Origin: Ministeria vibrans ATCC 50519
Lineage: Eukaryota > Protista > Filasterea
Length of the DNA stretch: 53,659 nucleotides
Direction: 5' to 3'
Assembly (NCBI GenBank): GCA_943704425.1
Contig: CALSCP010001092.1
Span: forward strand, 1 to 53,659
Positions 1,192-48,804 of the stretch are shown here, in pieces. A program made the translations under genes and the position numbers. Below the pieces are notes generated by a model that worked only from the letters and a program-made list of their open reading frames with translations, made no database searches and was not told the origin of the DNA. Position 1 is the stretch's first letter; each line of letters starts with the position of its first letter.

Positions 1192-4100
1192 TCACTCTGT
1201 TGTACTGGCCAACCTGGCTCTTTTACTATTCACCACTTCCCTTAGCATCTCGGAGGCACTCGTTGGAGCATCCCAGTGCAATTGACGTTCGCAGCTCAGC
1301 CGGACGAGAGCCTGCTCGGCGACAGTGGAAGGAGCCTGCTCGGCGTCAGTGGAAGGAGCCTGCTCGGCGTCAGTGGAAGGAGCCTGCTCGGCGTCAGTGG
1401 AAGGAGCCTGCTCGGCGACAGTGGAATCACCCAGTCGCTGCACCACAGCCTCCAGATGCTGCACCGAGTCACTCTTTTCAACATATTCCAACACAAGGCG
1501 CGCCAAATCGGCAACACCCTTCAATTCCTCTACAAGTAAATAAACATGAGAAAAGAATAAAAAATTCCCCCATGACGAAAATCGTACCATCAAGTTTATC
1601 ACAGGTCCAGCGTTGCTCCTCATCACACGGCTGAAAGGCGGGCGCCATTGCCTTACGCTTCTCAATGAGCTTGGTGCGGAAGAAAGAGTTGTCCGCCACA
1701 CCATCCATTGGCGCCGGCATCATCAATAGCGGCAGACCAGCCGCAGAGATGGACCGTTCGAGGGCCGGCTGAAACAGCTTCAGGATGAACTCGTCGCCGG
1801 CGGCGTGTGGGAAGTCCATCAGGGCCGTCTGCACCAGTTTTAGTTGCCACTCTTCGCTCAAATGTGTCATGCACGTTGCAATCAGCGAGCTCACAACTGT
1901 AGAGGAATATTAATTAGAAAAAAAAAAAAAACATGAGGGAGAAAGAATAACAAGAATTAACAACACTTCTTACAGCGGTGAATGGTCTCCGTGGAGAAGG
2001 TCATAAGGGCTGGAATAAGAAGATCAAAGCTTCCCAGAGCGTTAAGTTCGCTAACGGTCGCACAGCCGGTAAAAAGACGGCGAAGGGTCTGCACAGTGGG
2101 CGCCCAGTCATTGGCCGATGCGCCGATCACTGTTTCTGAGCACGTGAGCACCAATGCTGCAGACCACGACAACCCAGAGTTTGTATCAAGATCTCGTTGA
2201 GACTGTTCTTTAAGCAATGCATAGCCTGCAAAGTTGTTGCTAAACAGCATGGGGAGCATGGTGTCGCGTCGACGCGCATCGCCACACATCACCAAACGCT
2301 CAGCGGTTGCCCATACGTCGCGAGCAAGGGTCTGGCTAAGATCTTGCAGAGGAGCATTGGCATTGCGTGCAAGGCGCAACGTCATAGGCGCATGGCTAGC
2401 TGCCCACACAAAAAACTCGTCGAGGGCCAAATTGCCATAGGGCGCGTACGCCTCAAGCTTAAACGTCTTATTGTTCTTGCGTAGGCTCACGAGAGCGGAT
2501 TGATCGAGCTTGAGAAGATCGCCATCAAAGAGACCAGCGGAGCGACGACACGCGCGCTTCACATTCTCGTCGGTCAGCAACACACCCTTGAAGCAGTAAA
2601 AGTGCCAGGCGGCCGTGAAGAAGAGGTCGTCGCGGTCGCGGAAGTTGGGCTGACTGTGGAAGCGCTTCATGACAGCGGCGCAAAAATCGGGCGAGTGGGT
2701 CGCGTCAAGCAGCATCACAAGGTTACGAGGCGTCACAAGTGACAGGGCACGCGGGTACTCTCTGACAAGCTGCTCAAAGGCGCTGTGATCCGTAACCGGA
2801 TCCTCCTTCCACTTGCTGCGGAGACCCTCGTCGTCGAGTGCTAGACCGTAGATGACCTTGAGACGCAGTGTGTGCAGGTCGCGTGCCGACACGGTGTCGC
2901 TCACCAACTGGTACGTGTGCACTCGGTCCAGATAGGCAAGACCTTCAATCTCGTGCCTTGATGGCTTGGTACCCGTCGGCATCATGTAGGGAAACTGGTG
3001 CGGTACCTCGATGTAAGAGAAGCGCGAGAAGCTCGCAAGGCACTCAGACACCTGCTCGTGCAGCAGCGTCTCGTCAATGACGTTGTCACGGTCTCCTTCA
3101 ATGTGGGCCGCGCCGAAGCGACACATGTACACCAGGTAAATGGCAATCTTTGAGGGCGGATTGAGGCGATGCATGAGGTCACCATTGGGCAGCAGTTCGT
3201 TGGAGGTCGACCAAAGCAACTCGTTGAAGGTCATGCTGCGTCCAGGGTTGTGCATGTCGTTGAGTGCCGCGTTGACCAACAGAAGTGAGGGAGGCAGCTG
3301 CGACACAGGCTGGTTTTGGGGACACAAACGACCCACATACGAGGCGGCGTATCTCTTGATGTCGCCCGCAAAGTTCTGTAGAATCTTGTGCACCACATGA
3401 TAGACGGCATCGACAAGGTCGCGAATGAACTCGTGACTTGTCGACTGGAACTTGCGGTGAATCTCGTGTACAAGCGCATTCTTGTTGGTCTCCAGGTCGA
3501 GCACACCACCGCTGCCAATGGTGCGAATGAGCTCATCAAGGAAGCGCCACGAGAGGGTGTTCTCACCCAGTAGCGATCGCAGAACCACCACGAGCACATG
3601 AAGGTAGACGTGCGCCGAGTCGCCCTGGTGCTCCCGCAGACGCTCCACAATGCTCTCAAGGTCGCCCTGGCACATCAACACAGCACACCTATCCTCATCG
3701 CCAACGACGTGTTCTTGGATGATGTCGAGCATCGTCTGGTCGTACCGATTGCCCACCATCAGCAGAAACATGCTCTGGTCGCGCACCAGCTTGCAGATGC
3801 GCACGAGCGCCGCACGATCGACATAGTGACACTCATCGAGAATGAGCACTTGGGGTAAAGCCCGCTCGTGATCCCTGGGCGGTCGCAGCAAATCCTGGGG
3901 AGCCATTTGGACAAGATCCTCCGAGCTGCCATCGAGAACTTGCGTGAAAAATCTTCTGTTGCGCTCAAAGTCTTGCACGGCCACCGACTTGCCCACACCG
4001 GGCGGGCCAATAAACAGACGAACTTTGACCTGGTGAACTTGAATCGTCAACAACCGGAGCGACTCTTCACGCCATGTATGCGTCACCAGGTACTTGGTCT

Positions 4101-7100
4101 CGACGGGACGCACGTCACACAGCTGTTGGACGGTCCAGCGTTCGAGGCCACTTGCCTGTTGCAACGGCGAGCTCGAGCCCTGGTGCATGCCAAAAGGTCT
4201 TACCGAGTGTACAATGAGTCGCTCGTTGAGTTCGGGCGCACGGAAGGGTGTCTGCAATCCCTCAAAGATGATCGTCACCCACGGCTGTCGCTTGGTTCGC
4301 TCGCAACACCACTTGAGACTCAGGTCGGGATTGCTCAGCTTTGCTTCCATCACATAGACAAAGCACACTCCTCGATCAATGGCATCCTGTAGCTTCTGAA
4401 AGAGCGCCGCCGGCGTCGAGATGTGCGCTCCATTGATAATTTCGTACTGCACACCGTGACGCTCAAGCGCCCCCAACACGTTGAGCACACGGTCGACAAG
4501 ATGCACGCCAAACCAGTGACCGGCACGCGTGCTGATGGCCTGCAGGTCGGGCGACAGACAACACGCGTCCACCAGTGCATCCTTGGCGCGCATCACACTC
4601 TCGCCACCACGGCGCCAATATGCTCCGAGTGCCTGTGCAAACGATGCAATGATGAGAGACTGCTCGGGCGTGCCCTCAAAGGCATTTGTAGTGAGACTCT
4701 CGCCCGTGTCACTCGCCAAAATGCGCATCGCGCACTCAAGCACCTGGTACTTGAGATGCTTGGGCAGCGGACTCAGAATCATTTTGATAAACACCTCCTC
4801 AATCTCCTGCTCGGCGTTGGCACTGTTGCTTGACTCCGACACGGATGCGGGCCCAACATTTTGCTGCGCCGCCTCATCTGCCGCTGCCGCTGCCGCTGCC
4901 GCCTCGGTGAACAAAAAGTTGTCATCTTCGTCTGGAATGATGTTAAACACGTTGGTGGGGCGACGCGCATTGGCGTTGGGTTCTTCATCCGCGACAATAG
5001 GGTCGTCATGGGCTGCCTCTTGGCCATCAACTAAGTCGTGCGCTCCCAATTGTACCTGCGGTGCAACATGGATCATGGCCTCGCCAAAAACACGAGCCAC
5101 GGCGCCCAAGAGAACGCCAATGGGCTGACCGTGTGTGGACGAGTAGCGCAACGACCATTTGCTTGGCTTCAACATCTCCCAGTGTAGACGCGGCAGCCGT
5201 CGTTGGTCAGAGCCGCTTATGGCGTTCAGCGACAAGGCACGCGTTACGGAGCGTTGGTCGTGCCAGTATTCGGCGACGGCGCGTGTATTGGCACGGAAGA
5301 AGTCGTTGTGTAGTTTGGCCATGCCTTTGGCAAACTCACCGGAGAGCAGCGGATGGTCCTGGTAGACGCCTCGGAGCAAGTCGAGGACAATGGGGCTGTT
5401 GACACGCGAGAGACACTCCTCAAGTTTGTTCCATCGGGCCGGACCGTGATGCTCGCGCAGTCGCTTTATCCTCCCGTAGTTGTTGTCACACGGGTCTTCC
5501 AGCCAATCGATAACAGCCTGGCGCAGGTTCGAGGTCAATGGGGCAGCACGCTCATCACAAGCAATCGTCACAAGCACACCGCATATGTTGTCGGTAAAGT
5601 GGTTGCGCGACAGATTCATGCCTTTAAGTAAGTGAGTGAGACAGCAATGGCTGCGGTCGTGCGTCTGATGCGTATTTTCTTCACAACAAATAGGTCCCAA
5701 GCCACCGTCGTTGAGAGCCGACGTACCCGCATCGTAGCCCGCAAAGAGTGTTGTGATCATGTCGCTGGACTTGTCAGAAAAGGTGTCGAGAGCCCAGTCG
5801 ACGGGGACACGTACCACGTGCACCTCCCACACCTTGCTTCCTTTGACAAGCACCACACCGTCGCACACAAGCACCAGCCCCTCGTGCGCCTTCTCGCAGA
5901 AGAATAGCCAGCACATTTCGGACGAGACAAAGTTGCGTAAAATCTTGCTGCTGTTCAAGTTGGGACGGGATGCCGCCGACAGTTTGTGGTACGCGACGAT
6001 CTGGTTGTTTCCATACGCGTCGGCCGAGTGCACCTTCTCGAGCACAACGTTGGCAAGCGGCTTCAGCTGAATGGTCGTGTAGAGATGCCAGGGGTCGACA
6101 CGGATCATGCTGCGTGCGTCCACCACCGAGATTGCGTCCATGGTGTTTGCCATAGCCATCTGTGTTGGCCATGTAAAAATGCCGCCGGCCGCGTTGTCCA
6201 AGCGCGCCGGCGCCTCTCCTGCGTTTCGCTGCCGCAAAGGCGACCAGGCAGGCACATTGCCATTTGCCAAGTGAGGTGGGTTGGCAGCGTTTCCAGCGGC
6301 AGCGCGGGCAGGTGGCACTGTGGGCGCCTGTGTCCTCATGTTCTCCACGCGCCTCTTTTTTGCCTCCTCATTGAGCTTCAAAATTTCCGCCTTTGTGAGT
6401 TTGGGCGTGACTGTAGGGTCGGACAGACACGGCACGATAAACTGATGGACATACGGATCGTAGAAGCCGTCGGACAAATCAATCGCGTGCGCCATGCTGC
6501 GAGCGGTTGCAAACGTCATGGAGCCACCGGACAGGTGTACGATACAGTCGTCAGAGAGGAGTGTGCCCGACAGCGCGTTCTTCCAAAACTCACTCACCTG
6601 CTCAGCGTTCAACTCTATCAGAGGAAACCGCGAGAGATTCAATTCAATGAAGACTTTGCGCAGCGACAAGTACGGCAACATGTCGTCCAACATCAACACT
6701 GACGCCATGACATGAAAGAGAGCCGCAGAGAGCGTTTCGCACCTCATGCGTGCCTCGTCGGCGAACAGTTGCTCATGCGTCACAGTCTTGCCGTACAACT
6801 CCGACGGGAAGCGTGAGTGCACCTCAGCCTTGAAAGCCTCAAGGAAGCTCCGGAGGAAATCAAGTCCTTGCGGGCTGCCGGGCAGCGTAGGGGTTTTGTC
6901 GGCATACAGAAGAAACACAAAGAGAGTGGTAAACTCCTTGATGTACGCTCGAGGTGCGTCCAGATTGTACATGTAGCCTGGCTGGGCGGCGCGCGGGTCG
7001 TTTTCATCCTGAGCTAACTTGGACATCCACTCCTGTACGACGTTGACTGTTCTGGGTGGCTCGCCGTCGAGACTCATGGTCACCTCGGCGGGCTTGCGCG

Positions 7101-10100
7101 CTTCATAACACTCAAGGAGCACGTCGACAATTCCCTTGCCAATGCTCGAGGCAATCTTCAGCGCCGCATGTTGGTACTCGTCCGTGGCGGGGTCAAGACA
7201 GTCGTTTGAAATCTCGTTGGCAATGTCGGGGCTGGGGCAGATGGCGCGCAGACGCGCGAGCGTGTACAGAATTTCGTCGACCGAACGATCGCCACCGAAT
7301 CGCAATGGTGAGTGCTGCACCAGATGATTCACCAGCTGTGTCGGCAATAGGCGTTCACCATCGAGTTGTAGCTGGTCCGAGACGTGCTCAAGCTGGTCTT
7401 CAATCTCGCTCTCTGGCACCTTGAGCCACCCAGCAAGCACGTCAATTGTAATTCCAAACGAGATAAACCACATCACAATGAGACCAAAGGTGACGCGACC
7501 CGTGCTCACACACGAACCGTTTGGATTGTCCGGCACTTGGCTCGGTGGATCATCCGGTAACGTCTCCACGACAACCACCGGCTTGTGAATGGCTTCCTGG
7601 GCAAAATCTTCGACACGGATGCCTTCGGGAGTCGGGTCGGGCATGTGCTCGGGCGGGAGAAAGGTTTCCAAGTGCTCGAGCACTCTCTCCGCAAGGGCAT
7701 TACACTGATCATCCTGACCCACAATTGCAGCGTCATTGGGCACCACGTAGACGGTGTACTTGTAAAAGGTACAACGTTGTTGTGCGTTGCGAAATGCGTA
7801 CTCAGGAATGAGGACACCGGGCAAAATACCGCCTGTCTTGCGCTGCACAATACACTTGGCTTCGGCAACATCGGGGTGCGCGCAGGCGTACTTGGTGGGT
7901 TCGTCAAGGGCAAAGTAGGAACCGCTAAAACGTGAGTGAGTGACCGCATACTGAAGGTCCGCATTGAGTGGATGGATAGACTTGTGGAGGTGCTTGAGCG
8001 CAATCAGATTGGTGCGAATGGTCTGACGGTCGACGCACGAGGTGACGCTAAAGGGCACCAAAAGGTCCTCAACCATGCCGCGAGGACGAAAGAGCGCCTC
8101 TTCGTCGGGCACGGGCCAGCCACTGATGTCGTCCTTGATTGTCTGGAGTGCATCGGCCGGGAAGATATTCCACACAAATGCAATCTCGCGGTCAAAGTCG
8201 TTGCGACTATACGTCTGGGGCTTGTGAATGCAAAAGAGCTTGCGATCCGTTTCACTGGAGAGCCCGATGCGCTCGCGCTGGTCGGGAGTGAGACGATAAC
8301 GGTCGGCAAGACTGAGCTTGAGCGCATGCGACAGAGTATGCTGTGCGCCAAGCAGGAGAGCAAGTGAGTTTGCTGTTGTCACCTGATGACGCACGCATGT
8401 GACAAAGTCGATCGAGGGCATGCTACGCAACATGAAGAGATTGCAAAGGTCCGACTCGGAGGGATCAAGCTCCCAAAGGGGTCGGCGACACCAAAGAATG
8501 AGCGCAAGTGTGCGGTGGGTACCCGTGCAAAGACGCTGGTCTCTTGGCAGGGCATCAAGAACTGCCTGAAATCCAGATGAGGGTGACAGAATGGAAGCGA
8601 GCTGGTCCGCCACAATGCTGATGCGTACACGGTCAACGCCTTTCGATGCGTCGGCATACTTGTTGAGCAATTCGATCCCGAGCAGTGACATGCGCTCCAC
8701 GGGCGCATACCCAGCGTTAGGCTCGAGAAAGCTACGGAACGAATGCTCGCGCAGGACGCACACGACGCGTCCAATAGTGGGCACCGCATACTTGTTCAGA
8801 TTGAGCGGAAGCAATGCCAGCACAGTCTTTCCAGCGGGGGTGCTCAGGAACTTGTTAGCAAATTCAAAGTCGAGCGGAGCACCAGGTTGCACAAGCGTGA
8901 ACATGTTCACCAGTCTCTGCGTCACGGCCTTGTTGCTTCCAGATGAGGAGACATGAGCAAGCCAGTACTCATGGGAGAGGGAAACCAGAGCACTGAGTGC
9001 GTGAATGTGGGCAAGTTTGCAACATTGTTGCAAGAGGCGCGCCAGGGCGTCAGCTGAAAGCGATGCAAAGCACGTCCAGAAGGAACCTGAAAAGAGGGTT
9101 TCACGCGGACTGGTGCTGCTAAGGGTGCGCGACTGGGTGAGCGCCTGAGCGAGTGTGCTGATGGCGTTGTCATCTGACGACGAAGCTATCTTGTCCAGGC
9201 GGGCACCGAGCTCGCTGGTGCTTGCAGACGGGCGCGAGAGCCAGGCAAGAAACCCAATAAAAGGGTGTGCAATGACGCGCTTGTCGAGGGCGGAGATGTT
9301 CGTACCGGATGACACGACGCACATGAGAAAGTCAACAAAGGCAGAGCCGAGCACGTCGGGTTTGGCCGAGGGGCCCGGCAGCAGCGAGAGCAGGTTGCTT
9401 CCCTGCGAGAAACGGTCGACAAAGTGCGGCTGTTTGAGCAGCATGTTGACTTTTTCGCCAGAGGAACCAGTGTGGTTGTCGAGGCCAACAACAACGCTGA
9501 GCACCGACTGCGCAATGACATCGAAGTCGCGCAGACGAATGTTGCGTTCAAGGAGCAACCGAAGGTCGACAGGAGTGAGGACAAGTGCGCAACGGAGGTG
9601 CTCCGGCAAGTGCGGGGCGATTTCGTTGGTTTCGATGCACAGACGCAGCAGAGCAAGGTGATCCTGCAGGTGGGAATCCACAAGATTTGCGTCTTTGATG
9701 AGCGGATGGTTGAGCTGCTCGGCGAGACGCAAAAAGTTGCTGTTGTGAATCTGTTCGGGCGAGAGATTGGCGAGTAATTCAAAGAGATGCGGCACGGGGA
9801 TGAGACTGATGAGTTTGAGGGGGTGCGCTGTGATGGCGAGCGCCTCGAGAAGCCGGTCAAGCGACACGGGAAACTCGGGTGCGCTGCTAATGAGACGCGC
9901 AGGCAGCTCACCGCCATTGACGAGCTCCTGCATGATGAATTCGTCGACGGTGAAGGTGGAGTCGAACGAAGGCTCGAGGTAATACGGACCATTGCCAGCG
10001 TTGAGGCCTACACCGGCACCGTTGCCCTCGCCCATCTCAAGAATGGTGAGCAGACAGGGGCTCAGACGGTTACCTTCGGGTAAGCGCGGGAGCAGCGACG

Positions 10101-13100
10101 TTTCCAGAGGAGCAGTACTCGTCAAGTTCCACACGTAGGTAAGGTAGTCGGCGGCGCGTGAGGACTGATTGGAAAACTGCGCGGCGGGGTACACGGCCCA
10201 GAAGTCACGGAAGGTCAGGAGGGGCACGGCGGCGCTGGCGCCCATTGCGACAATTGCCGCAACCAAGTTAACTTGGGAGAGTATGGAGGGGTCGTTTACG
10301 TTGTCAATATTCTGCGCCTGGACGGCCCTGATAAAAGCCTCGACGGAGATGCTGGAGCACTCACTGGCGCCATACTCAAATAAGTGATTGGCCAGTGTCT
10401 GGGGGTTGGCCTGAAGAAGCGCCACGAGAATGGGGTCCTCGGCGAGCACATCGTAGGTGGCGACACCCACAAGACAGAGAGCGGAGACAAGGGTGATGGG
10501 AGCATGAAGAGCTGCTATGAGGCTGGTACGGTCGGGATTTCGAGAGAGTAGCTCTTCCACCTCGTTCGAGTGATGACGGCCTGCAAAGGGCAGGCTGAGG
10601 AGGTAATCGGCAAGCCAGGCGGTGGCAGCCGGGGCGTCGACGGAGGCGTGAATGATCTCGTCGTTACCGTTGAGTTTGACGTCGGTGGGGTAGACGCGTT
10701 GCTGTACTAGAACGAGTCGAATGCCGTTGCGTGCGCAAATATCAACAAGCTGCGCCTTCTCGTAGCTGACAAACGAGTCGCTGTGGAGCACGGTGACGCA
10801 CTTGTCATCACTCGTGAGAGCCGAGTCAATGATGCCACGCACTGCGGCATTGGCAACAATGAGTTGGAGCTGGCGGCGATTCAAGGCGGAGCTAAAGTCG
10901 AAGACGGCGCTGCGGAAGCCGCTGGCAGCCAGCATGTGGCTTACAACAGCCACATTCTGCGTGCAGACAATGGCAAGGGCCCCACGACCGACACGGTTGT
11001 TGCTGCGATCCAACGCCTCGCGGATGGTGGCAATCCATTTGGTCTGACGCTTCTGAGCGTGCGTCTCAAGCATTGTCTGGCTCTTCCTGAGTTCTTGGAA
11101 GGCACGATTCGGAGTGAAATTGGCACTCATCCAAATGATATTGGCGAATGCGGTGAACCCGGCGGCGGCGGACACCACCTCGCTGGCAGCGGCAATGGCG
11201 GGGATATTAGGGTCGCGCATGATGAGGTCGGCAACACCACGGGCGTTGCGAATGAGGCGACTCACGGCCGGATTGTTGACAGTAATGAGACGGAGGTTGG
11301 GCGCGCTGCGAATGGTCTCGATGAGGGCGTCAAACTGTGTGTTGGACAAGTCGGCTTCGATGTACACAAAGAAGACAAAGAGGGCGACATCTTGAGCACG
11401 CTGGCGCATGTGTGCTAGGAGAGCGTCAAAGTTTTGGGCGGTGACGGTGCACTTGGCCGTGCCAAGCGAGAGGGGCTCCTCCACAGAGTCAATGGTATTC
11501 ATAATGAACGAGAGGTTGTTGTCGGCGGGATCGGCAAGGAGAATGGCACTCTGAGGGGTCCCGTCGTTGCCACTGTGAACCAACAAATTACGCAGGGTTG
11601 TCGTGTCACCAATCGCTCGATCGAGTTGCTCTCTAAGTTGCCCGAGAAACTCGGTGAGTAAGGGTCTCATGGGACGAAGCTTCATGAGAGGAACGCTGAC
11701 GTGCGTGGCGAGCTCACGAAAAAGACCGGTGTGGGCAATATCAAGGGCTCTACCAGCGGCATTTCTTGCGTGTTGCAGCACAAAGTCGGCTGCGTTTACA
11801 AGCGTGTCGGCGGACTCTTGGAGATGATGGAGAGTCAGGAGGCCCTCACGGATGCTGTCACACGTGTTCGCCACAGCCGGGTCAATACCCTGCCTGGGGC
11901 CTTTGAGGTAAAGAAGGCCAAGGCGCATGAAGGGCCGGCGAGAGTCGCCAGGGGAGTCAGGCATGTAGCAGATTTTGCGGGCACCCGGTAGGAGAGTGAG
12001 GGGCGAATCGCGGAGGGCGATGGGGTTGTCGGGCCTCGCCTGGTCGATAAAGCAACTCTCGTGAAAGATGTCGTAGCGCACGGGGATGTTGCGGTCGCCG
12101 AGGAGTTGGTCGTGGGCAATGCTGACGTCCAAGAGGATTGTTTTGATGTCGGCCTTGAGAAAGAGCATGGCAATGTCGTGTTGGCCGTTGAGGACGCGCT
12201 GAAGAATGAGCGCACCCGCGCCATTGAGGTCGGGCACAACGGAGCAGGGGACGTCGGCAAAGATGCCCACTTCGACGATGATGTCGTTGGTGCCAGGGAT
12301 GGGCCTTCGGTGCACGGCAATAAGGGTGGGATCGATGACACGGACGACCGAAGTAGATGGGGTTGGTGTAAGGGCGCGTGCGACGAACAGTTCGAGGACA
12401 ACTTTGGGTGTGATCTCCAGCGAATTGGGGAGATTGGCGTCCTTGCGAATCTCACGCACCTCGGCCGCTGCTTTGATTGCCGCTTTGACCCGGGCAGTAA
12501 TCTGGGGTACTCTTCCTTCAATCCTTTTGATGCGTTCAGCCTCGTCGGGCGAAACAAAGGAATACTTGACGAATTCAGCGTAGCGGGTGAGGAAGGCGGT
12601 CTGTTGAGTGCTGGTGATCGTTGCGTCAATATCCGTGACGGGAGGCAGATCGTGGACAAGGTTGTTGGTGCGCAGTGCAAGATGCACCTGATCAATGATG
12701 TTGCGCAAGACGACACGCTTTTTGTCGGCGCGCATGGTCATGGAGAAGCCGAGTGTAAGCGAGACACGGTCGAAGAGCAGCCGAGACATGTGATTGACAA
12801 TGTCGGCGCCAAGGAACTCGTCGGAGCCGCACTCTTCGATGACACGCTGGCACAAGTCAACACCCATGAGAAGTTGTAGTGTGGTGAGCATGATATTCCT
12901 CATAATGGGTGCCTGGCCAAACATTTGAGGTCGCAGACGGCGCATCAGAGTCGCGACAAAAGCCACTGCGTTTGGTGAGCGGTCCAGGCCGAGGGCGCAC
13001 TTGACGTCGTCAGGCAGTAGGTTTTGGATCGTCTCACACGATTGTTCATCAAGCGAGTCGTCTGGTGAGCAGCTCACAATTGTGTTGAAAAGTGTCGCGT

Positions 13101-13257
13101 CATCAACACTCGCGATAAACTTGAGAGCACACACTCGGGCAGTCACCACCGACCAAGTTCCGTCGTGGTGGAACTTGTGTCTGCGCAAGAATGCTTGAAG
13201 CTCATGTTTGCTTGCCGTGGAAGGATCCAGGGCTAAGATGTTGTCGAGGAGCGTCAT
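1192..13257 (-). CDS. Giant AAA+/P-loop NTPase-like protein A (~3,976 aa), uncharacterised
   Basis: Exons 13257-1974, 1896-1588, 1529-1192 (GT-AG, phase-consistent, 11,931 nt). First ATG is at 13257; the ORF-track start is TTG. Walker A GPPGVGKS (~3985-4008), Walker B LILDECH (~3826-3846), sensor-1-like VGNR, sensor-2-like LSWRFL. Many motifs shared with the gene at 35220-48804. Confidence 0.85.
1308..1426. repeat. 24-bp tandem repeat x5 encoding (STDAEQAP)n in the last exon of giant gene A
   Basis: Unit GAGCCTGCTCGGCG[A/T]CAGTGGAAG repeated head-to-tail with no spacers. Confidence 0.95.
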
Positions 13258-13679: not shown

Positions 13680-13687
13680 NNNNNNNN
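13680..13687. other. Assembly gap (8 N), flanked by poly-T and GA-rich repeats
   Basis: N bases in the sequence; the 5' part of NCBP1 is missing here. Confidence 0.99.
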
Positions 13688-14362: not shown

Positions 14363-14399
<37 letters not shown>

Positions 14400-23116: not shown

Positions 23117-23306
23117 TCTTGTCCATTGCAACTGGAGATGAAAGAGAGAGCTAATGCGAAGAGAGCGATGTGGGACTATAATACACTGAACAGAACTATG
23201 TGAAGAAGAGAAAATTAAAAGACGATAATGTTTTTTGGACGATTATACGTGTGACTGCAACAGATTACGAACTCAAAAAATAACTCATTTTTTGACACAC
23301 ATATAT

Positions 23307-38200: not shown

Positions 38201-41200
38201 TCGAGGGAGCGCCAATCACGTTGACATTGTTGACCCTACGTTGCAGGCCATCAATTCTCTCGCCTCCTATGCAGGTTCATCCGTCCGCGTTGTATTCTCC
38301 GCCGATCGTCTCAGCACGGACACGAAGAAACGTCTGTGTATGCGCGCACCGGGCGCCGCCGTTGTCCATTACGTCTTTGTGTCACAGTCTCGAGTGCCCT
38401 CTGACATACTCTTGCCAAATGTGTTCATTCTCGAATTGGACACTAGTATCGCCACCCTTTCCCAGTCGATATCTCTGGCCAAGGCCGGCACCGCTGCGTC
38501 TGTCTCGACTACCAACAACAACAACAACAACAACAAGAGTGGTGGCTCATTGGGCGTTGGAAATGTCGCAAGTAGTCGTGCCGATCCGCGTCGCATGCTT
38601 GCCATTCATCTTGTGTTTGGCTCTGTTGTGCGTCTTTCCTTGCTCTACTCGCTGGACGACCAGGAGGCGTTGCTCGCGCATCTGTCTGCTGCAACACAGA
38701 GCGTGTCTGTGTCAGCATCCAGGGTGTTCCTTGACGAACTCATGAAGCTATGCATCCAAGATTCACTTGCGTTTGTCGACGAACACCTCTTTAAACTCAA
38801 CGTGCGCGAAGAGACCCGCATTCGCCGTCTCGCTCGTATCATCTTCCTCTGTGCGACCGTCGCTATTGCGAAAGATGTCGAACCCATCAGCTTTGAGGCA
38901 TTCCTTGCGGACCCCGCCTGTCAGGTGCGCTCCTTCGACGCCCGTGTCCTTCTCTACCTCTACTACCTTCGTCGCTTTCTTTCCGTCTACTACCCCAAAG
39001 CGGTGTTTGTCACTGACGACGAAACATTTTCATGGTCCGCCGTACTCCCTCCCTCGGCGCATCTTGTCGACTCCGTCGTGTTGCTCAACTTTTTCACTGG
39101 CGATCCCTGTTCGTCGAGTTACCGGGCAACACCACGCGGCGCTGTCTTGACCGGCTCGCAAGAAGACCAGTACGCAAACCTGGCCGCTCGTCACCTGTCG
39201 CTGCCCTGGTCGCGAGTGAGCCGCGACGCTGCATTCCCATCGACGATGCATGTGCTTGAAAAGGTTCTGTGGGCATCGGTTGAGCCGGTCAAGGTGCTCG
39301 CCTGTTGCCTCAGCTCGTCGCTTTGCAACTGGGGCTCGAGTTTGCACATTGGCTCGCTGACGACTACTCGCTGCCAGGGTATGCCCGCGTCGCCCGAGCT
39401 CACACGCCTTGCCTGGAGCTTTGCCGGCATTGTTGCCTTCCTCACCGATCCCACAGCAGTCGCACCCGTTGCAGAGTCCTTCATGCGGCACTCAGCTGTG
39501 ATCAAGTTTATCATGGCACTGAATGGCGCAGTGGTCTTAGAAATAGCCAAGATTCTGCAGCAGTCCGAGGCGCTTCTGAAGCAGGCGCTACGCTTCACCA
39601 GCGTCGATTTTGACATTCTGCTGTCTCTGGGCATTCACTTTTCGCTCGAGATGCTTGAGGTGCTCCCGCTCGACATGAAGATTATGCTCATTGCAATGGA
39701 CGTGGGCCTTGCCGCTAACCCCTTCACAACTCAAAGTGGGTTGTCCATGTTCCTCGCGCGCAGTGAGTCTACTGGACTCCTTGACGGCACCGACAACTCA
39801 CCAACGACCGAGACGCGTGTCGAAGTGGGCTCGGCTCTCATCGAGTTTCTCCTCAACGACATGGCGACGCCCAACGACGCGACACACAAGCAGAGTTTGC
39901 TGCGCCATCCTTTTGCCACAACGCTGCGCCAGATCATGATCAGTCCTGACTCAATCCTTCAGTTTCTCGGCGAGGGTGACAACGATGACGCGATCGAACC
40001 CTACGCTTGGTGTTCCAATGATAAGTTTGACGTCGAAGCGGCGCAAATTTTGTCAACGGAGAGTATCAGCGAGGAAGAGGCGCATAATGCCAGTTTGACA
40101 CTTGGGGAGCTTCCTTCATTTGGTGTGTGGTGTGCGCTCACCCCCGACTCGTTTGGCTTGCTCTTTTCGCTGTGCACCAGCGAGTCTCAGGTGGTTTTTT
40201 GCCTCGGCATGTTGGCACGCGTCTCGTTCGCAAAAGAGTACTCAGAGGCACGCCTTGACAAAGTTCTCAGCCATGCACTTCAGGCGGTGCAGCCCTCGTC
40301 GTCGACCGACTTTGAGCTTGTTTGCCTGCTCAGCCAGCAACATCCCGGTGAGCTCCTGGCGCCCGTTGTTGCCTCCTTTCATCGGCTCTTCCGCTCTCCT
40401 GTTGAAGAGGACTGCATTGACGTGAACGCAGACATTACGACAACCCTTTTGCATTTTTGCAACGCGCGTCTCTCCCTGACGTTGCAATCGTTGCTCACCA
40501 AAAACATCAAGCTCTTCTCCGACGCACAGCAACCTGTGCCCGTCGAGTACTTTGACTTTGCCATGGCGGCGCTTCTCGAGCAACTTACGGACGCCGAGGT
40601 GGGCTTCCCGTTCACTAAGGACAATGTCGACAGCGTCACGTCACGCATGAAGCAGCTCATGCTTCTCCTGACACCCCTTGGCTTTCAGCGAGTACAGCAG
40701 ACAATCCAGAGCTCGGAGAACATGCTGACGACCCATCGCGGTCTGCTCCTCATCGCCTGGCTGCGCGAGCCCATGTTCAACATTGAGCTTGACGACACCC
40801 TTGTTGAGAGTCTCGATGCGATTCTGAACACCGCCGCGACCGCCGACTTTGTCGACCATGTTCATAAAGCACCCACAGTCGTGTGTTCTTTGGCGCAGTA
40901 CCTCGTCATGCCCGAGCTTCTCAGCACCACCAGCTGCAACCACTTCAACAAAATATTCAAGCGCAGCCAGATTCCCGTCGACATTTTTGTCGTGACGCAG
41001 CGTCGCACGCTTATCTACCCGCCTTACGTGCTGCTCGTTTCCCATCGCGAAGTGCCGGCGGAACAGGCGGAGCTCATTCTTGATACGATCACAGTGAATG
41101 AGTGGGAGGATTCGACTACGCTTACACCGGGCTTTGCCGACCTCTCCTTTGATCAGCAACTCAAGTGCTTCCGCCTCGACATTGACTCGGGATTGCACCA

Positions 41201-44200
41201 ACAGTCTATTGTGACCAATCTCAAGGCACTACGACACATCCGCACGCTCAAGATGATTGAGGTGAACGGACACGAGGAGGCGGATCCTCTTGCGGATCGC
41301 ACCGGTCGCATGCTGGCCAACGTCGTGTGGACGTGGTTTCGCTGCTGGGGCGCCACCTTTGCGTTATTGGAGCGCTTTATTGTGCGTCACACGAAGGAAA
41401 AGTCGGGCTATTTGGTGGATCTGGTCGAGCCCATGCTGCAAAACTATTCGGTGGAGATTGGCGATGCGGCGTCGCACTTTCCCCTGCCAGCTCTCATTGA
41501 CACCACTCCCGTGCTGCCTAGCATCACAACACTGGCGGGCACCACAGTTGAGGATGTGCGCTACACACTGGCGCGCTTCAACGCGCTCATCAATCGCTGC
41601 CCTCCATCCGAGGATCGCCAAAGACTTCTTGGTAATGTCACGAGCGCTATGGTGGCGAGCACCAAAGAGAATGCAAACATGCCGAGCGCCGAGTTGAACT
41701 CTTCTCGTTTGCGCATCTGCGCCGAATACCTCAAGTGCGTCACACGCGAGTTTGGCGCTGTCGTTGCCAAGGACGCGTGTCAAATCTATCGTGAGGGTCA
41801 GGAGATTCGTGAGCCGGCCAACCTCAGGGTGCAGCGCGCCTACGACCTCAAAGAGCTGCAGCACGTGCTCACTCCCTTCGTACTGCTTCTTCGTCAGCTC
41901 ACGGCCATTGACGATCTCACCTCTGCGGCGATCCGCATTGACGACGTCCTGAGCAACTTCGTTTCGAGTGCTAGAGATACCATTGAGCGAGACGAGAGCG
42001 ATGTCACCGTCAAGGAGGTGTGCCAAGCGATTCTCTATCGTGCCGTCGCGAGTGTCATTGGCGTCTCCTCGTGCTCCACCAACAACCACTGGCTCATTTG
42101 CCGATTTCACTCGGTCTATGTGGAAAAACACATGTGTCAGTGTCGCCTGACACTCAACGAGCACAACTGGGCCAACAACAAAGACTTCCTGCCTATCGAC
42201 ACGTCCCTCGGCCCCCTGCGCTTCTCGGCCAACGGATCGCCGGGCGTGGAGTGTAACAAGCGCATGATTCGCAGCGATCCCGGCATGGCGGTGCTCACGC
42301 CACATATTGTGAAACAATTCACTTCCAGGACGATGCATTCTACTCGCGCTCAGTCGATCAACCGTGACACCTTTGCTGATACGGCGCCTCCGCGCAACAG
42401 TCGGAGCAAGGCGGAGTCCGTCTATAAGGAAACTTTTTCGAGTCCCGTTGACCCCGCTGCAGCTGCAGCCGCGGCGGCCTCCCCCGCCTCAACGTTTACG
42501 ACAGAGGCTGAGGGTGACAGTGTGTTCTTCACGGCATCCACTGACCTTGTTGACGAAGGGAATCGTACTCGTGGTGGCCTGAGTGTCGTCAGTGGTGTAG
42601 GTAGTTCCGAGCATCACACTGACGAGCACATTGCTCTGGTGCGAAAGCTCATTGAGGCTGGCGAAGGACTTGTCTTTGACTGTTCCGAGGTGGTCAAGTG
42701 TGACTTTGACACAATTGACAACATTCGCTATGCGACAATTTACGTTCCTAACGGCGGCTCCATCTTTCTCACGCACAACCGCAGCAACAACAACATGACG
42801 TACTGGTCGCTGACGGCGACACCCAGGGCGCATCCCGGCACCGTCGTCAAGCGCGAATTCTCGTCGCACTCGGACGCCTGGGGCTTTCTCTGCGACATGT
42901 CCAACAAGAGCGTGCTGGTGCTGGGCGAGTGTCTTCTGCGCAAACAGCACGGCTCGTTTGTGCCCTTCACCTTTGACTGGAAGTCGGTGCGCAAGACGTT
43001 CATCATGTTTACGGAGAGTCGCAATCTGCTGGGCCACCAGAATCTGCTGCGCGAAAGCGCGTGGTGTCTGCTCGACAAAATGTGTCACCTTTTGATGGCA
43101 CAGTTTGTGCCCGAGGGTGCGCACAAGGCGCTATTCAGTGACTCCGAGATGGTCTCGTCGTTCATTCGCCACGTGTACTACCCACACTTGAGCAAAACTA
43201 CCGTGGCCATACAGCAGCGTAAATCTTTCGACAAACTCATGATCACGATCATGAGATACACGGTGATGGCGCCGCTTATTTCCAAGTCACTTCGACTCGT
43301 TGCGCAGTATGTCTACTCGCACCTGAGCACCGGACAGAACACGGTGAACATTATTACTCGCGAGCAGCTGCGCGCAGGCTCTGCCGATGTGTGGCGCAAC
43401 ATTACTGACACACTCCACACATCTTGTGATTGTGTCGACGATGACTCGGCGCTCACGTCGCTTGTCGAGTGCTACGCTATGTACCGAAGAGGTGCCCGGA
43501 TTAACGCCGCCGATCAAGCTGCCACACTCTCGACAAATGTCTTTAAGACCTTTCTGAACATTCTCAAGACCATCAGCGACGGTGCGCAGGAAGAGACTGA
43601 TCCCGTGGACGCACTGATTGGCTTTGCCCGTGTGCAACGCAGAGAATGTGGTGGGCTTCCCGGTCTTGAGCTACTCACGTCTGACCTGAGTGTGTTGCAA
43701 ACACTGATGCAGACGGTGGACGCGGCGATTCTGAGCGTGGGTGGCGTCAGCGACGGACTAATGGTGCCCCGACTTTTGTTTGCAGAGTTTCGCGAGCATC
43801 TTCTTGAGCGACTTCCCATCATCACTGTCAATGACCGCATTCAGCTGTTCCGTCTGTTCCAGCGCAAGGTGCTTCCGACGGCGCTTCAAGTTCAGACTGC
43901 GATTTTATATACGGGGGTCGCGGATCCTCATGAGGAACTTGATGAGTGGGCCGCACGCCAAGTGTTTTATCAGTTGCAATTGGCTGGCGATGGTGCGGCT
44001 GCTGCTCCTGTAGCCGCCCAATTGCACCCTGCGCCACCGCTGCCCGGTGTGGTGCTTGAGCTGGTGACTGCACTGAGAGAGCTACCTACGCACGACGCGG
44101 CCAATGCGGCAACGCTGGGAAATGCCGTCAATGTCGACGTCCTCGACGCCATGTCGCCCGAAGTGCTTCGGGCACGACTGGCGCTGCGTGAGCGTGTACG

Positions 44201-44830
44201 CGAGGACAGCAACGTGTTCTCCAAGGGGGGTGAGATTGGAGCGGACGACAGCGGCGACGGCTACAACGACGGTCTGGTGATCACGCTGTTGTCGGCGCAA
44301 GCACGCGTGCCCATCACGTACGCCATGTTCCAGAGCCGTCATGAGATTCAGCAGCTTGAGGTGAAGGACGACTGTAAGCGACAGCGCGCCGTGCTCGGCT
44401 TTCTGTTTGGCAAGATCACACTGCCACAGCCGGAGCAGACCCTTGGCTTGGAGGTGTTGGGAGAGACGAAGCGGCTGCAGTCGTGGCGCAACTGGATGAT
44501 TCAGGTGATGCGTGCACCCTTGCGTAAGATTGTACAGAACACAGTCATGTCGATGATCCTCGACAATGACGCGGGTCAGGGCTTCGATCGGTTGGCACAG
44601 CCGTCCATGACCGAGCTGATTGCTCTGCATGCGCTCACCGAGCTCACGTTTGACCTGGACATGCCACAGCGCAGTCAAGTGCTGAAGCAGAGTCTCGGCT
44701 GTGTGCAACAAGTGCCCAACGAACGACTGCTTGCGCGAAAGGGTCACAAGTACGTTGTCAAACTCGCTCAAATTTTTATAGTGTATAGCGTTATTTTTAA
44801 GGATTGCTTTTTATAATAATAAGAATGATA

Positions 44831-44877
<47 letters not shown>

Positions 44878-47800
44878 CATATTGTTTCGTATTATTTTTA
44901 AATTATTATTATTATTATTATTATTGTAAAATTATTATAATTATTATTATTATTAATGTCTTCTTCTCTATTATTATTCATATGAAACTAATTAAATCTT
45001 TTCTCTGTCTGTTTGATAGGTACGGAATGGTTGTGCAGACACAGGCGGCTGGGCGTGACATTGCGTGGGAACTGCGAAAAAAGAACATCAATGTGGAGAG
45101 TCTGGACATGCGGGAGATGGCCGAGACTGCCGGAGTGACGGACGAGCTGCTATTCAACCGCATCATTGGAGGATTTGCGTCGGGCGCCGTCATTGTGGTC
45201 GTGCTCATTGACAACATGTCCAACAAGTGCTACAAGTGGTGCGCGGAGCACACGCGCAAGAACCCGTGGCGCTACATTTTCTTTGTGGGTCTTCATGTCC
45301 ATGCGTTGTTGCCGGAGAACATTGACCGCACAAGCTTTGTTGATGGCATGGGCGACATCAATCTCTTTCGCGCAAACAACCAAAACAACAGCACGGTGCA
45401 GATGAGTCTGGTGTCGCTTAAGCCCATTGAAAGTGTCGAAGATTTGCCGCTGCCTTTTGCCACCCACCTGTACCAGAGAGCGCCCGAGGAGCACGAGGTT
45501 GATGTGGACCCTGCCGCGGCAGTCAATGCGACGTACACACACGAAGAACTCAGGGCGAGCCCGGCTGTGCTGCAGCAGTTCTTCCGCTCACGACGCTTTG
45601 CGTCGAGCTACTCACGCGACTGGTTCAATCACGCGGGCGGGAACATTTCGTCGTCGGCTGACTTTGCGCTGGTGGGACCGCCGGGCATTGGCAAGACGTA
45701 TCTTCTGAATGAGCTGCTGCGCGAGCGAGTTGACCTGCCCAAGATGACTATTGACGCGAGTAGCGAGGACATGTGCAACCAGTCGCTTGAGGCGTTTGTG
45801 CAGGAGCAAGTGGATGTGCGTCGAGAGTTCAACAAGCCGCTGTTGGTGGTCATTGACGAGTCACATATGCTTGAAGTGGAGCGACTGCACATGCTGCTGG
45901 TGCTGTTGCGTCGCTACGAGATCAACGTGATGATTGTGCTCATTAGCAACCGCTTTGACCAGGAGCAGACGGAGCTGATCCACCAGCACTTTGAGAGTGG
46001 CATGGTGCTCAACTGTGGCAATGCCTTTGAGCGCCTCTCCACCGTCTTTGACGATGTGTGGGCGGGTGACCAACGCATGTGCAGCTTCTTTGAAGTGTTT
46101 GCTCGTGGACTGCGTCTGATTTTTGGCGAAGACATGTGGTCGTTCCGTCTGCTTGTCAACAAGAAGGGCACCATCCTTGAGTGGTACTCGCTGTACGGTG
46201 ACGGCCCAAATCACGAGCACTTCAGGCTGCTAGCGGAGATGCTCCAGAGCAAGGTGCCGCTGCAGTCGCGCTTCTTTCTGGAGACGGTCTGCCAGCAACT
46301 GTGGGAGTACTTCCTGGAGGCCCACCGGCTTGAGAGTTTGCACGCGGCTGTGGTGGAAAGGTTGCCTGATGTTGAGAACGGTGGTGTCTCGGTGGCGCGT
46401 GCGCTGGTGCACGCGGCCCTGACGGCGTCTCTTCACAATGCCGATACGGCATTGTCGTACCCAGAGTTTACACGACGCCTAGCACAGCCCTACTCGACGC
46501 ACGCCGCCGTCAAGATTGCAATGTGGATGCTGTACTGCTATGCGTTGTCGGACGCCTACATTGAGAATGCGCCGGTGTTTGTGGCGCATGTGGGCGGAGT
46601 GCTTGGTAGGTTGCACGATGCGTTTGCGGCGTGCGACGCGCCCGACACCTTCCCTCGTCTGGAGGTGACTGCGAGGCCGGGGAATGCACAGCCGCTGTCG
46701 AGTTGGACGCATAATGGTCATGTGCTGTGCCAGCGAGTCGACTACAGCGACTTGTGGGCCGTCAACAAGATTGTCGAGCGCGGCTTTGGCGTCGATCACG
46801 AGCGACTGCAGCAGGCGCTCAGGACGAACCCGCGCGTCGATCCGCAGCAGCTGATTCGACTGGCCGAACGACTGCCCTTTGTACTCACGCTCATGACGCC
46901 CGACCATTTGCGCGCACTGATGCTTATGCCGATAAGTCGGCAACACGGTTTGCACGAGCGCGTCTTTGTGTTTTTGCAGGGCAACGAAGTCGACGCACTG
47001 TCGCACCATCGTAAAAGCTCTTTTATGGTTGCGTCGTGGTTGCTGTACTGCGAGCGCCGGTGTCGCACAGAGCCACCTACAGTTGACGCTATTGGGCGAC
47101 TGATGTGGCATGTAGTGGTCGACGAGCACACGGTGGCCATCGACGTGACGGTCCTGTTTATCTGGGCAACCGACAATGCATATGATTTGTTGGGCTTCTC
47201 GTCACAGCCAACAAAGCTGTTTGCGTTGCTTAAGCAGGACCTGACAGCACTGAGCGCGCTGCTGGTGGAGCAAATGGGTGTAGTTGCGGTGATAACGGAG
47301 CAAACCGAAGCGAATGCGCGTGCTGAAAGTGCGCTTGTAGTGCTCTTCAGCGGACTATTTGCGCGTCTGGCGGGCCAGTGCTGCAAATCGTGGCAGGGCC
47401 ACCACGCACTCATTACAAGCTGCTACCCACCGCGCGCAAACTGGTCGCCGCTGCTGCAGCACATGAGCCACGCGTGGCACTGCCATCTCTCGCCCGACGG
47501 CGCCCTTCTCCTCGACAAGAACCCCGGCTTCTGGGAGTTTGTCAAGAATCTCCATCATGCTGTACAGTCCAACTGTAAGCCAATAATAATAATAATTGTA
47601 TTGTTGATTGACTTGATTCGTGATTTTTTTTTTGTATTTTTGATTATTATAATAATATTATTATTATTCTTCTTTGGCTTTTTGTATTGAATTTTGTGCC
47701 TCTGTCGATATTATTATTACTTTAATGCGCTCTGACTCACACTTGGACTCATTCAACTCTTGTTTATTGCTTTCTGGTGTAGATATCAAAGGGATTGTGA

Positions 47801-48804
47801 TGGTACGCGGTGGCTTCCTTCCATACTCGTGGCAGCTGAAGATTCTACAGTCGAGCGTGAGCGTGGGGGATGAGCTGGCGGACCATGTCTCGCGCTTCTC
47901 GTGGGCGCTGCGTCGGCTCAAGGGTGCCGCAGCGACCGAGCACAACCTGTCGATTCAGCTGCCGCAATCGAGTCTGTTTTACCAGTGTCTCAAGCGCTAC
48001 GAGGCCAAGCTGTTCCACGAGGTGAAGTTTGTGCGACACTTGGTGCTGGCGTTGGCGGACATGCCACCGCCCGTGCACTGTGTGTTTCTGATCGACACGA
48101 GCCACAGCATGCTGGGCAAAAAGCCTCGGCCGACGCACGAGGACTTCCGCAAGGGGAACCCGACGACCAACAATGCGGTGGGCTGTGTCTTTGAGAAGAT
48201 CCGTTTCTTTATCAATATGCGCGTCGACCTGGGCACCAACGATATGTTCAGCCTGGTCTTCTACAACACCGACGTGCACATGCCCGAAGAGAGTCTCTTT
48301 GTGCGCACTCCTGAACTCGCGCGCATCAACGACGTGCTTCGCAGCTACAAGGTGCAGCGCGGGCAAGGCACGAGCTTTGCACCCGCCCTGCACGCCGCGG
48401 CCGAGCAGCTCCAAAAGGGAGCGCAGCGTAACAACCACCTTCTGCCTGTGGTGCTGTTCCTCACGGACGGCGTGGATCCTCATCTCGTCGAGAGAGATCC
48501 GAGAACGGGAGAACTGATGGTCCCACCACCCAGTCATGATATTCTGAAGAAAATTAATTGTTCATCGCGAACCTTGCTGGGCAGACTCGTGACCAGGCCG
48601 ACGGTTTTTCCCGTGTACTTCCAGACATGCGAGGGAGCGGAGCTGGTTGAGTACAGTGTGGGCATGCTGCGCGCGGTCACCAGGGCCTTTACGAAGATGG
48701 ACGACGAGGACGACGAGGACGACGTGACTGTCTTGTCGGCGACGAGCAACGAGGAACTTGAGACGAGTTTCAAGTCGATTGCAGCGGATTTGGCGAACAA
48801 GTAA
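35220..48804 (+). CDS. Giant AAA+/P-loop NTPase-like protein B with C-terminal vWA (MIDAS) domain (~4,368 aa)
   Basis: Exons 35220-44749, 45020-47574, 47783-48804 (GT-AG, phase-consistent, 13,107 nt); an upstream exon is possible. Walker A GPPGIGKT (~45675-45698), Walker B VVIDESH (~45846-45866), ISNR, WSFRLL. vWA motifs VFLIDTSHSM, GTSFAPAL, VLFLTDG. Confidence 0.87.
44830..44956. repeat. (TTA)n-rich tract in intron 1 of giant gene B
   Basis: Interrupted trinucleotide runs. Confidence 0.9.

Follow-up and report, generated by a model that had tools for sequence, protein, structure and literature searches.

Giant AAA+ proteins encoded by a linked gene pair in Ministeria vibrans are members of an undescribed protist family

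Giant AAA+ machines (AAA+, ATPases associated with diverse cellular activities) are few, namely dynein, midasin, and RNF213, and each runs a major cellular process. Midasin (MDN1/Rea1) has six concatenated AAA_5 modules near its N-terminus, followed by a linker and a region rich in Asp and Glu, and it grips the ubiquitin-like domains of Rsa4 and Ytm1. How RNF213 (mysterin) acts in immunity and in Moyamoya disease is not yet clear. In Mg-chelatase (BchI/BchD) and the MoxR-type pairs CbbQ/CbbO, NorQ/NorD, and RavA/ViaA, an AAA+ gene without a von Willebrand factor A (VWA) domain lies beside a gene whose product has a C-terminal VWA domain with a metal ion-dependent adhesion site (MIDAS); BchI and BchD are paralogs, and the proteins of these pairs are small, prokaryotic or plastid, and of the helix-2-insert (MoxR/Mg-chelatase) clade. 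RFC, ORC, and Cdc6, with subunits of 300 to 900 amino acids, act on DNA and clamps and form hetero-oligomers of paralogs. Here, we describe two giant genes, A and B, in a 53,659-nucleotide stretch of the genome of the filasterean Ministeria vibrans ATCC 50519 (contig CALSCP010001092.1; hereafter the window). An original prediction, made by a model from the letters of the window, had called their products paralogous AAA+ proteins of a candidate undescribed family; the family adds a further giant AAA+ machine, differently built, to the few that are known.

An undescribed family of giant protist proteins

Genes A and B encode intact members of an undescribed protist family of proteins 3,000 to 4,900 residues long. 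We built a profile from the aligned A and B modules (the conserved core treated in the next section) and used it in an exhaustive HMMER search of 1.84 billion representative proteins with E values up to 1e-3, through which giant viruses and prokaryotes were also covered. The search returned 139 proteins, with ordinary AAA proteins not among them, and many of the matches are 3,000 to 4,900 residues long and carry the module at approximately residues 2,500 to 3,400. We looked up names for 30 clusters of matches. Named members include the choanoflagellates Monosiga brevicollis, Salpingoeca infusionum, Codosiga hollandica, and Barroeca monosierra, the kinetoplastid Bodo saltans (at least eight family genes), the metamonad Kipferlia bialata, Amoebophrya, and four species of Symbiodinium (dinoflagellates). 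The Symbiodinium proteins are mislabelled "PAT23," and the other entries looked up are annotated as hypothetical or uncharacterized or have nothing but an AAA+ domain label for a name. None of these 30 clusters held an animal, fungal, plant, or prokaryotic protein, nor was midasin, RNF213, or dynein among the matches with names looked up, and literature and accession searches found no published description of the family.

Similarity among the members reaches far toward the N-terminus: residues 1172-2332 of B align with residues 864-1929 of family protein P0002, and residues 794-1383 of A have counterparts at corresponding relative positions in Bodo and Codosiga proteins. Because similarity extends this far into the N-terminal region, we regard this as a full-length family rather than a set of proteins with a shared domain. 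The proposal of a separate family of giant ATPases is borne out, as we found neither full-length nor domain-level orthology to midasin, RNF213, VWA8, or sacsin. Within the M. vibrans genome (29.7 Mb), the profile search identified exactly four family genes, so that A and B are joined by paralogs C, which has a VWA domain, and D, which has none (Table 1).

The original prediction had listed nine motif pairs occurring in the same order along A and B, and we found all nine in strictly that order. Its description of the two proteins as collinear but strongly divergent agrees with BLASTP, which gave two significant, collinear matches that reach well beyond the P-loop, one between A 1224-1667 and B 1468-1946 (E value 6e-6) and one between A 2972-3579 and residues 103-740 of B exon 2 (E value 4e-19, 22% identity); weaker collinear segments were found between the two. 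Each protein contains exactly one Walker A motif, consistent with the single intact P-loop near the C-terminus that had been noted. Intron 1 of gene A has the same position and phase (phase 1) as intron 2 of gene B, with WQLK[LI] 16 residues downstream in both proteins. Among the four paralogs, this phase-1 intron is common to A and B only, C and D having no intron there.

Differing termini had also been predicted. The C-termini of A and B do differ, but the prediction missed what distinguishes them: the last domain of B is a VWA domain in which the MIDAS is complete, and the split into VWA-bearing and VWA-less proteins is systematic, recurring in C and D and their orthologues. A full MIDAS is present in the VWA domains of B, C, and the choanoflagellate orthologues of C, and A and D have no VWA domain. 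When the VWA domain of B is aligned with those of C, P0017, and a Barroeca protein, its MIDAS site is seen to be complete, comprising DTSHS, the conserved Thr, and the Asp of TDG. This midasin-type C-terminal pattern (DxSxS...T...D) is absent from A, the C-terminus of which is a short tail bearing four AEQAPSTD repeats.

In a maximum-likelihood tree of the module, C-type proteins, every one of which has a VWA domain, and D-type proteins, which all lack it, form two well-supported clades. A and B lie inside a separate clade, of 14 sequences, for which GPPGxGK is the mark (Shimodaira-Hasegawa-like approximate likelihood ratio test, 100). Inside this clade, B groups with a VWA-bearing metagenomic protein and A with VWA-less ones, and the branches are long.

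Architecture of the conserved core

Members of the family share one order of parts: approximately 2,900 N-terminal residues without a recognisable domain, a degenerate AAA-like domain with the motif KWxxExT...PW...ExxDR, one AAA+ module with its lid, and a helical/winged-helix-like extension. Across 74 family members, [SG]PPGxGK[ST], DxS, a Walker B of the form hhhhDExH, the sensor 1 NR, the Arg of the lid SxR, and a later Pro and Trp are near-invariant, and A and B carry the complete set, from KWxxExT..PW through the Pro and Trp of the extension. Because these motifs are so nearly invariant, the AAA+ module looks catalytically competent, and from its motifs and modelled fold it would be a catalytically complete AAA+ module of the clamp-loader/ORC-Cdc6 type. 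In A and B, Pfam (E values up to 0.01) recognised nothing beyond the VWA domain and a weak, generic AAA domain, and the matches from PADLOC and NCBIfam were all weak, generic P-loop ones.

An AlphaFold2 (AF2) model of B exon 2, calculated from a 40-sequence alignment, has a predicted local distance difference test (pLDDT) score of 82.6 and a predicted template modelling (pTM) score of 0.82. Structural comparison of its residues 198-425 with VIA-align ranked ORC4 (Z 12.9), the RFC small subunit (12.8), and Cdc6 (11.9) at the top, with Avs5, Avs4, and NRC2, which are signal transduction ATPases with numerous domains (STAND), and dynein AAA modules close behind ORC and RFC. When the module profile was searched against solved structures, RFC1 and ORC1 led with 3e-5; the E values for RFC and ORC indicate superfamily-level similarity only. 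Foldseek with the same model placed dynein motor domains first and also returned SAMD9. At template modelling (TM) scores of 0.15 to 0.21, we did not accept these top ranks as dynein homology.

The original prediction saw only one AAA module. One module does appear to be active, but AF2 and VIA-align indicate that a second, degenerate AAA-like domain precedes it. We modelled residues 1890-3080 of A (1,191 residues) with AF2, and this model has a pLDDT of 58, with approximately 35% of its length confident, at model residues 490-600 and 930-1140. The degenerate domain lies at model residues 1021-1141 (pLDDT 83-96) and is predicted to be a five-stranded alpha/beta domain. VIA-align matched approximately 118 residues of it to dynein AAA1, RFC, Cdc6, and NVL with Z scores of 8 to 8.8, and P-loop domains of the AAA+/RecA type make up almost all of its best matches. 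We classed it as degenerate AAA-like because it has an AAA-like fold without a P-loop.

The N-terminal 2,900 or so residues are predicted to be mostly helical, and we make no claim of a new fold for them. In the approximately 1,000 to 1,100 residues upstream of the degenerate domain, where the gene A model is of low confidence and mainly helical, no further AAA-like domain was predicted. Foldseek with the model of A residues 1890-3080 gave nothing significant, and phmmer with the large exon of A and exon 1 of B gave no matches among solved structures. A word-indexed homologue search with A residues 2900-3775 found nothing, a search of the ESM Atlas with residues 900-2900 of A yielded no usable match, and neither transmembrane segments nor internal repeats were found in A to D. 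Within the otherwise helical region of A sits a predicted beta-rich domain of approximately 100 residues, for which VIA-align and Foldseek returned no fold match.

Approximately 23 residues after sensor 1, an Arg occupies an aligned column in 58 of the 74 family members; its assignment as an arginine finger of the clamp-loader (SRC-like) kind is by position in the model only. In A this Arg is replaced by Gln and in B by Gly (regions 3826-4008 and 45675-46020 of the window); D also lacks it, and C keeps it. Having no putative arginine finger, A and B may be poor hydrolases or regulatory subunits, and the pair may bind ATP but rely on other subunits, or act as a switch.

Gene pairs, RNF213-like neighbours, and gene structures

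Paralogs C and D lie head-to-head, 1.5 kb apart. A C-type gene adjoins a D-type gene in four organisms, the other three being Monosiga brevicollis and two metagenomic protists. The Monosiga orthologues of C (MONBRDRAFT_38958, with a VWA domain) and D (MONBRDRAFT_38957) are likewise head-to-head, approximately 1.3 kb apart; in the two metagenomic protists, the C-type and D-type genes are tail-to-tail. On a fifth contig, a VWA-bearing member is followed by a gene for more than 3,266 amino acids, and at two loci of Bodo saltans (L020, CYKH01001819, and L017, CYKH01002203), a subclade-1 gene is followed by a subclade-2 gene. Because adjacency is kept despite changes in orientation, we suggest that the two different paralogs are functionally coupled. 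Directly downstream of D lies a 1,728-codon open reading frame (ORF; C733:89418-94601, plus strand, L008/L009) with a weak match to a 3'-5' exonuclease domain (PF01612, 5e-4). An 857-codon ORF head-to-head with the A-like P0077 (L016) has no similarity to the family.

Genes A and B are in divergent orientation on the same contig, 22 kb apart, with an NCBP1-like gene, a GMP synthase gene, a C9orf72-like gene, and a coiled-coil gene between them. It is possible that they arose by local duplication followed by rapid divergence, as had been suggested. The tree puts each of them closer to proteins from other organisms. The approximately unbiased test does not reject the two as sisters (p 0.135), but at 22% identity and a distance of 22 kb neither is simply a recent local duplicate of the other. 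Given the family pattern of pairs, we prefer to see A and B as an old VWA/VWA-less pair that stayed linked, which fits that pattern better than local duplication does. Of the intervening genes, the C9orf72-like one is an 801-codon ORF at 23235-25640 (plus strand) with a DENN-type domain (PF15019, 1.3e-27), the NCBP1-like one is visible as an MIF4G fragment at 15638-16294, and the C-terminal exon of GMP synthase lies at 19343-20209.

RNF213-like genes neighbour family members at four loci, and in each case RNF213 is the only or main match among solved structures. In the M. vibrans genome, an ORF of at least 3,800 amino acids (C733:50002-61320, plus strand, L005/L006) lies tail-to-tail with C; it has AAA_5 and AAA_7 matches and a weak IBR match at its end, and RNF213 was its only match among solved structures (3e-21). 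At Bodo locus L020, an RNF213-like gene (4e-20) is upstream of the pair P0043/P0059, so that an RNF213-like, a subclade-1, and a subclade-2 gene follow one another in one direction. On an unrelated protist contig (L013), the gene head-to-head with P0069 is RNF213-like (5e-7) and has a precomputed weak RZ-finger match, and on a 1.18-Mb metagenomic contig (L021, ENA ERZ25333236) an RNF213-like gene (3e-30) is directly upstream of P0021. In total, RNF213-like adjacency was seen in four of approximately nine contexts with enough flanking sequence and in at least three family clades. With no more than four family genes in the M. vibrans genome, and RNF213-like genes also few there, chance adjacency is unlikely. 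In a BLAST comparison of A to D with the neighbouring RNF213-like ORF, no match was found.

Gene A is a giant open frame at 1957-13284 on the minus strand (about 3,775 to 3,790 codons) with a first exon of 11.3 kb, and an AATAAA immediately 3' of its stop codon. Runs of N (assembly gaps) occupy positions 2-427, on the 3' side of gene A, and approximately 13600-13650. Because the latter run is only about 350 nt upstream of the start codon, the promoter and 5' untranslated region of gene A are incompletely known. Gene B comprises open frames at 35088-44816 (plus strand, 3,242 amino acids), 44982-47690, and 47674-48804. Both of its introns were first predicted from sequence and are skipped exactly by public transcript-like contigs (three runs, two studies), which indicates that gene B is expressed and spliced as modelled; the contigs terminate 44 nt past the stop codon. 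Transcripts thus back both introns of B, while the introns of A are predicted from sequence. Long (ATT)n/(TAA)n microsatellites occur at 44808-44968 and 47580-47690, in the gene B introns, and at 49080-49600, downstream of B; genomic contigs from public runs break at the first of these.

Table 1. Coordinates of the genes and their parts, given as window positions for A and B and as positions on contig C733 for C and D
Feature	Position	Strand	Basis or remark
Gene A	1192-13257	minus	3,976 aa; predicted ATG at 13257, stop 1194-1192
Gene A exons	13257-1974, 1896-1588, 1529-1195 (1529-1192 with stop)	minus	GT..AG junctions keeping frame
Gene A introns	1973-1897 (77 nt), 1587-1530 (58 nt)	minus	GT..AG; predicted from sequence
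AEQAPSTD repeat array, gene A last exon	1300-1400	minus	four tandem 24-nt units
Gene A conserved family module (degenerate AAA-like, active AAA+, lid, helical/winged-helix-like extension)	2023-4431	minus	family profile A3, E 9e-165
Gene A degenerate AAA-like alpha/beta domain, without P-loop	4195-4557	minus	AF2 model and VIA-align
Motif KWCCERTKRQPW inside gene A degenerate AAA-like domain	4279-4314	minus	sequence
Gene A Walker A GPPGVGKS	3985-4008	minus	sequence motif
Gene A Walker B LILDECH	3826-3846	minus	sequence motif
Gene A sensor 1, within VGNRYDQ	3736-3756	minus	sequence motif
Gene A predicted beta-rich domain, ~aa 2387-2490 counted from TTG at 13284	5815-6126	minus	AF2, pLDDT 76-93 (model residues 498-601)
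Gene B	35220-48804	plus	4,368 aa with probable ATG at 35220 as start
Gene B exons	35220-44749, 45020-47574, 47783-48801 (48804 with stop)	plus	sequence prediction and transcript-like contigs
Gene B intron 1	44750-45019	plus	270 nt, GT..AG, (ATT)n-rich; skipped in contigs of runs X1, X3
Gene B intron 2	47575-47782	plus	208 nt, GT..AG, phase 1; skipped in contigs of runs X1, X3, X5
Gene B conserved family module, exon 2	45021-47573	plus	profile match 5e-186; AF2 pLDDT 82.6, pTM 0.82
KWCAEHTRKNPW, second half of gene B degenerate AAA-like domain	45234-45269	plus	sequence
Gene B putative active AAA+ base and lid	~45612-46295	plus	VIA-align; PF00004 at 4.7e-8
Gene B helical/winged-helix-like extension	after ~46295, within exon 2	plus	AF2 model
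Gene B Walker A GPPGIGKT	45675-45698	plus	sequence motif
Gene B Walker B VVIDESH	45846-45866	plus	sequence motif
Gene B sensor 1, within ISNRFDQ	45942-45962	plus	sequence motif
Gene B C-terminal VWA domain	48082-48477	plus	PF13519 at 3.3e-8, PF00092 at 1.2e-4
Gene B MIDAS DxSxS element (DTSHS)	48094-48108	plus	VWA alignment
Paralog C	61866-75725	minus	4,620 aa; AAA+ plus VWA
Paralog D	77198-89074	plus	3,959 aa; no VWA

Candidate functions and comparison with known systems

Our tentative reading, to which we give a little short of an even chance, is that the family forms a two-subunit AAA+/MIDAS machine that works with RNF213-like ligases, plausibly in a cell-autonomous defence mounted by protists that feed on bacteria. 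One paralog with a VWA domain and one without would form a hetero-oligomeric, ATP-driven assembly, like the subunits of RFC and ORC or like BchI/BchD. As the RFC/ORC-like modules bind and hydrolyse nucleotide, the assembly would be switched or moved, and the MIDAS domain would be controlled in this way. The role of this MIDAS "hand" would be to hold a partner protein by an acidic residue, perhaps one in a ubiquitin-like domain, as in midasin and BchI/BchD. The machine would act with RNF213-like giant ubiquitin ligases, either as its target or as its co-workers, in cell-autonomous defence. For the immunity idea, the four RNF213-like neighbours are circumstantial support.

Several observations weigh against this two-subunit reading. 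Whereas the C/D pairs are tight, A and B are separated by 22 kb and by unrelated housekeeping genes, and both are without the putative arginine finger. The N-terminal 2,900 or so residues, which make up most of the protein (approximately 70%), have no assigned fold, and AF2 gave a pLDDT of 58 where tried. No RNF213-like gene lies on the contig of A and B, and none neighbours the family genes in Monosiga (on the visible side), L012, or L016. In addition, Bodo and L021 may be related lineages, in which case the independent RNF213 associations would possibly number three rather than four.

A bolder version, which we consider doubtful, is an ancient, pre-animal defence machine of three parts, in which the giant AAA+ pair with its MIDAS hand would be physically coupled to an RNF213-like ligase, the MIDAS domain gripping a ubiquitin-like domain of the ligase or of the ligase's substrate. 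If this were true, RNF213 biology would gain a partner that was lost in animals. The repeated RNF213-like adjacency offers a lead, open to testing, to what RNF213 did ancestrally and with which partners. The family occurs in the unicellular organisms most closely related to animals, among them the tractable Monosiga brevicollis, for which transfection and genome editing are available (PMC8592570), as well as in kinetoplastids, metamonads, and dinoflagellates.

It is rather unlikely, in our view, that these proteins are STAND/NLR-like sensors, in which, as in Avs, NLR, and SAMD9 proteins, the single NTPase would be a nucleotide switch and not a mechanical motor, oligomerising the protein after a ligand is sensed by the VWA domain or the huge N-terminal region. 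Avs5, Avs4, and the plant NLR NRC2 score nearly as high as ORC and RFC in VIA-align (Z 11-12.4), the alignments continue into a beta-hairpin region near residue 586 of the B exon 2 model, and SAMD9 is among the Foldseek matches. The missing putative arginine finger of A and B would also suit a switch, and immune sensors would be in keeping with both the RNF213-like neighbours and the lineage-specific expansion seen in Bodo. However, the motif pattern is typical of AAA+ proteins (a hhhhDE Walker B, an invariant sensor-1 Asn, and a sensor-2-like Arg), most family members retain an Arg at the clamp-loader finger position, and RFC1 and ORC1 are the best sequence matches. Moreover, the NTPase is placed C-terminally and not, as in STAND proteins, with an effector on one side and a repeat sensor on the other, and no repeats were found.

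We rate equally low the chance that the family is a housekeeping remodelling machine without a role in defence, serving complex assembly, membranes and the cytoskeleton, or the flagellum, with the RNF213-like neighbours reflecting shared regulation or chance. The head-to-head C/D pair has been kept between this filasterean-like protist and Monosiga, which implies long-term purifying selection, and the genes around A and B are housekeeping genes. The named members are all flagellates or have flagellate stages, and of those with known lifestyles only Symbiodinium and Amoebophrya are not free-living, which would suit a housekeeping role. This explanation does not account well for the patchy distribution, with animals, fungi, and plants missing from the 30 named clusters, the very high divergence between paralogs, the eight or more copies in Bodo saltans, or the four RNF213-like adjacencies.

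That A and B are highly diverged versions of midasin, RNF213, VWA8, or dynein is very improbable, even though B resembles midasin in its giant size and C-terminal MIDAS and Foldseek puts dynein motor domains first. Pfam found no AAA_5 or AAA_7 match in either protein, and each has a single Walker A, whereas the midasin ring is made of six AAA_5-type modules in the N-terminal third. The AAA_5/AAA_7 core, E3 module, RING, RZ, and IBR of RNF213 were not found by Pfam, nor were the HATPase_c-like repeats, DnaJ, and HEPN domains of sacsin (E values up to 0.01). VWA8, of approximately 1,900 amino acids, has tandem AAA_5 modules plus a VWA domain, and the module of A and B is instead of the RFC/ORC type. 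No midasin chain appeared among the matches of the module profile to solved structures (E values up to 1, best 60 listed) or in searches with exon 1 of A or of B. The phmmer searches with these two exons were blank, whereas the same test gave 3e-21, 4e-20, and 3e-30 for the true RNF213-like neighbours (C733, L020, and L021). Finally, no midasin, RNF213, or dynein is among those of the 139 profile matches with names looked up, the proteins would have one active and one degenerate AAA-like domain rather than six, and the TM scores to dynein are those given above. We give next to no weight to an artefact (pseudogenes, misassembly, or chance open frames): runs of N lie near both ends of gene A, but the open frames span about 3,790 and 3,242 codons, spliced transcript contigs refute the idea for B, and conserved relatives exist in many organisms.

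Returning to the AAA+/MIDAS machine that we favour, its active module is, from motifs and predicted fold, a clamp-loader/initiator-like member of the AAA+ superfamily, with Walker A and B, sensor 1, lid Arg, and fold all matched. RFC, ORC, and Cdc6 are its best structural (Z 11.8-12.9) and sequence (3e-5) matches, and they share with it the Walker B DE, the sensor-1 Asn, and the lid Arg; most family members also have an Arg where the SRC finger of clamp loaders would be. However, these proteins are far smaller, and nothing in the family indicates DNA binding. The STAND proteins (Avs, NLR, SAMD9) have the same order of nucleotide-binding domain, helical domain, and winged-helix-like domain, with comparable fold scores, but the family differs in its AAA+-type motifs, in an NTPase near the C-terminus, and in having no repeat sensor that we could find. 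RNF213 is likewise a giant AAA+ protein, and most of its AAA modules are inactive; no homology to it was found outside the generic AAA fold.

Two systems come closest in overall plan. Like midasin, B, C, and their orthologues are giant proteins (approximately 4,000 to 5,000 amino acids) that combine AAA+ with a C-terminal VWA domain and a complete MIDAS. Unlike midasin, the family has one predicted active RFC/ORC-like domain and one degenerate AAA-like domain after some 2,900 residues, and it occurs as paralog pairs of which one partner has no VWA domain. BchI/BchD and the MoxR-type systems resemble it in the adjacency of VWA-less and VWA-bearing genes, which holds for C/D-type pairs in four organisms, with A and B linked at 22 kb. 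The family differs from the MoxR/Mg-chelatase group in that its AAA+ module appears to be of the clamp-loader/initiator type, with no Pfam match in A or B to AAA_3, AAA_5, or Mg_chelatase of the helix-2-insert clade, and in that its partners are approximately 4,000 amino acids long and both have intact Walker motifs. Overall, these proteins are AAA+ machines with a MIDAS hand that form an undescribed family of their own, likened to midasin and to BchI/BchD-type pairs and a member of neither.

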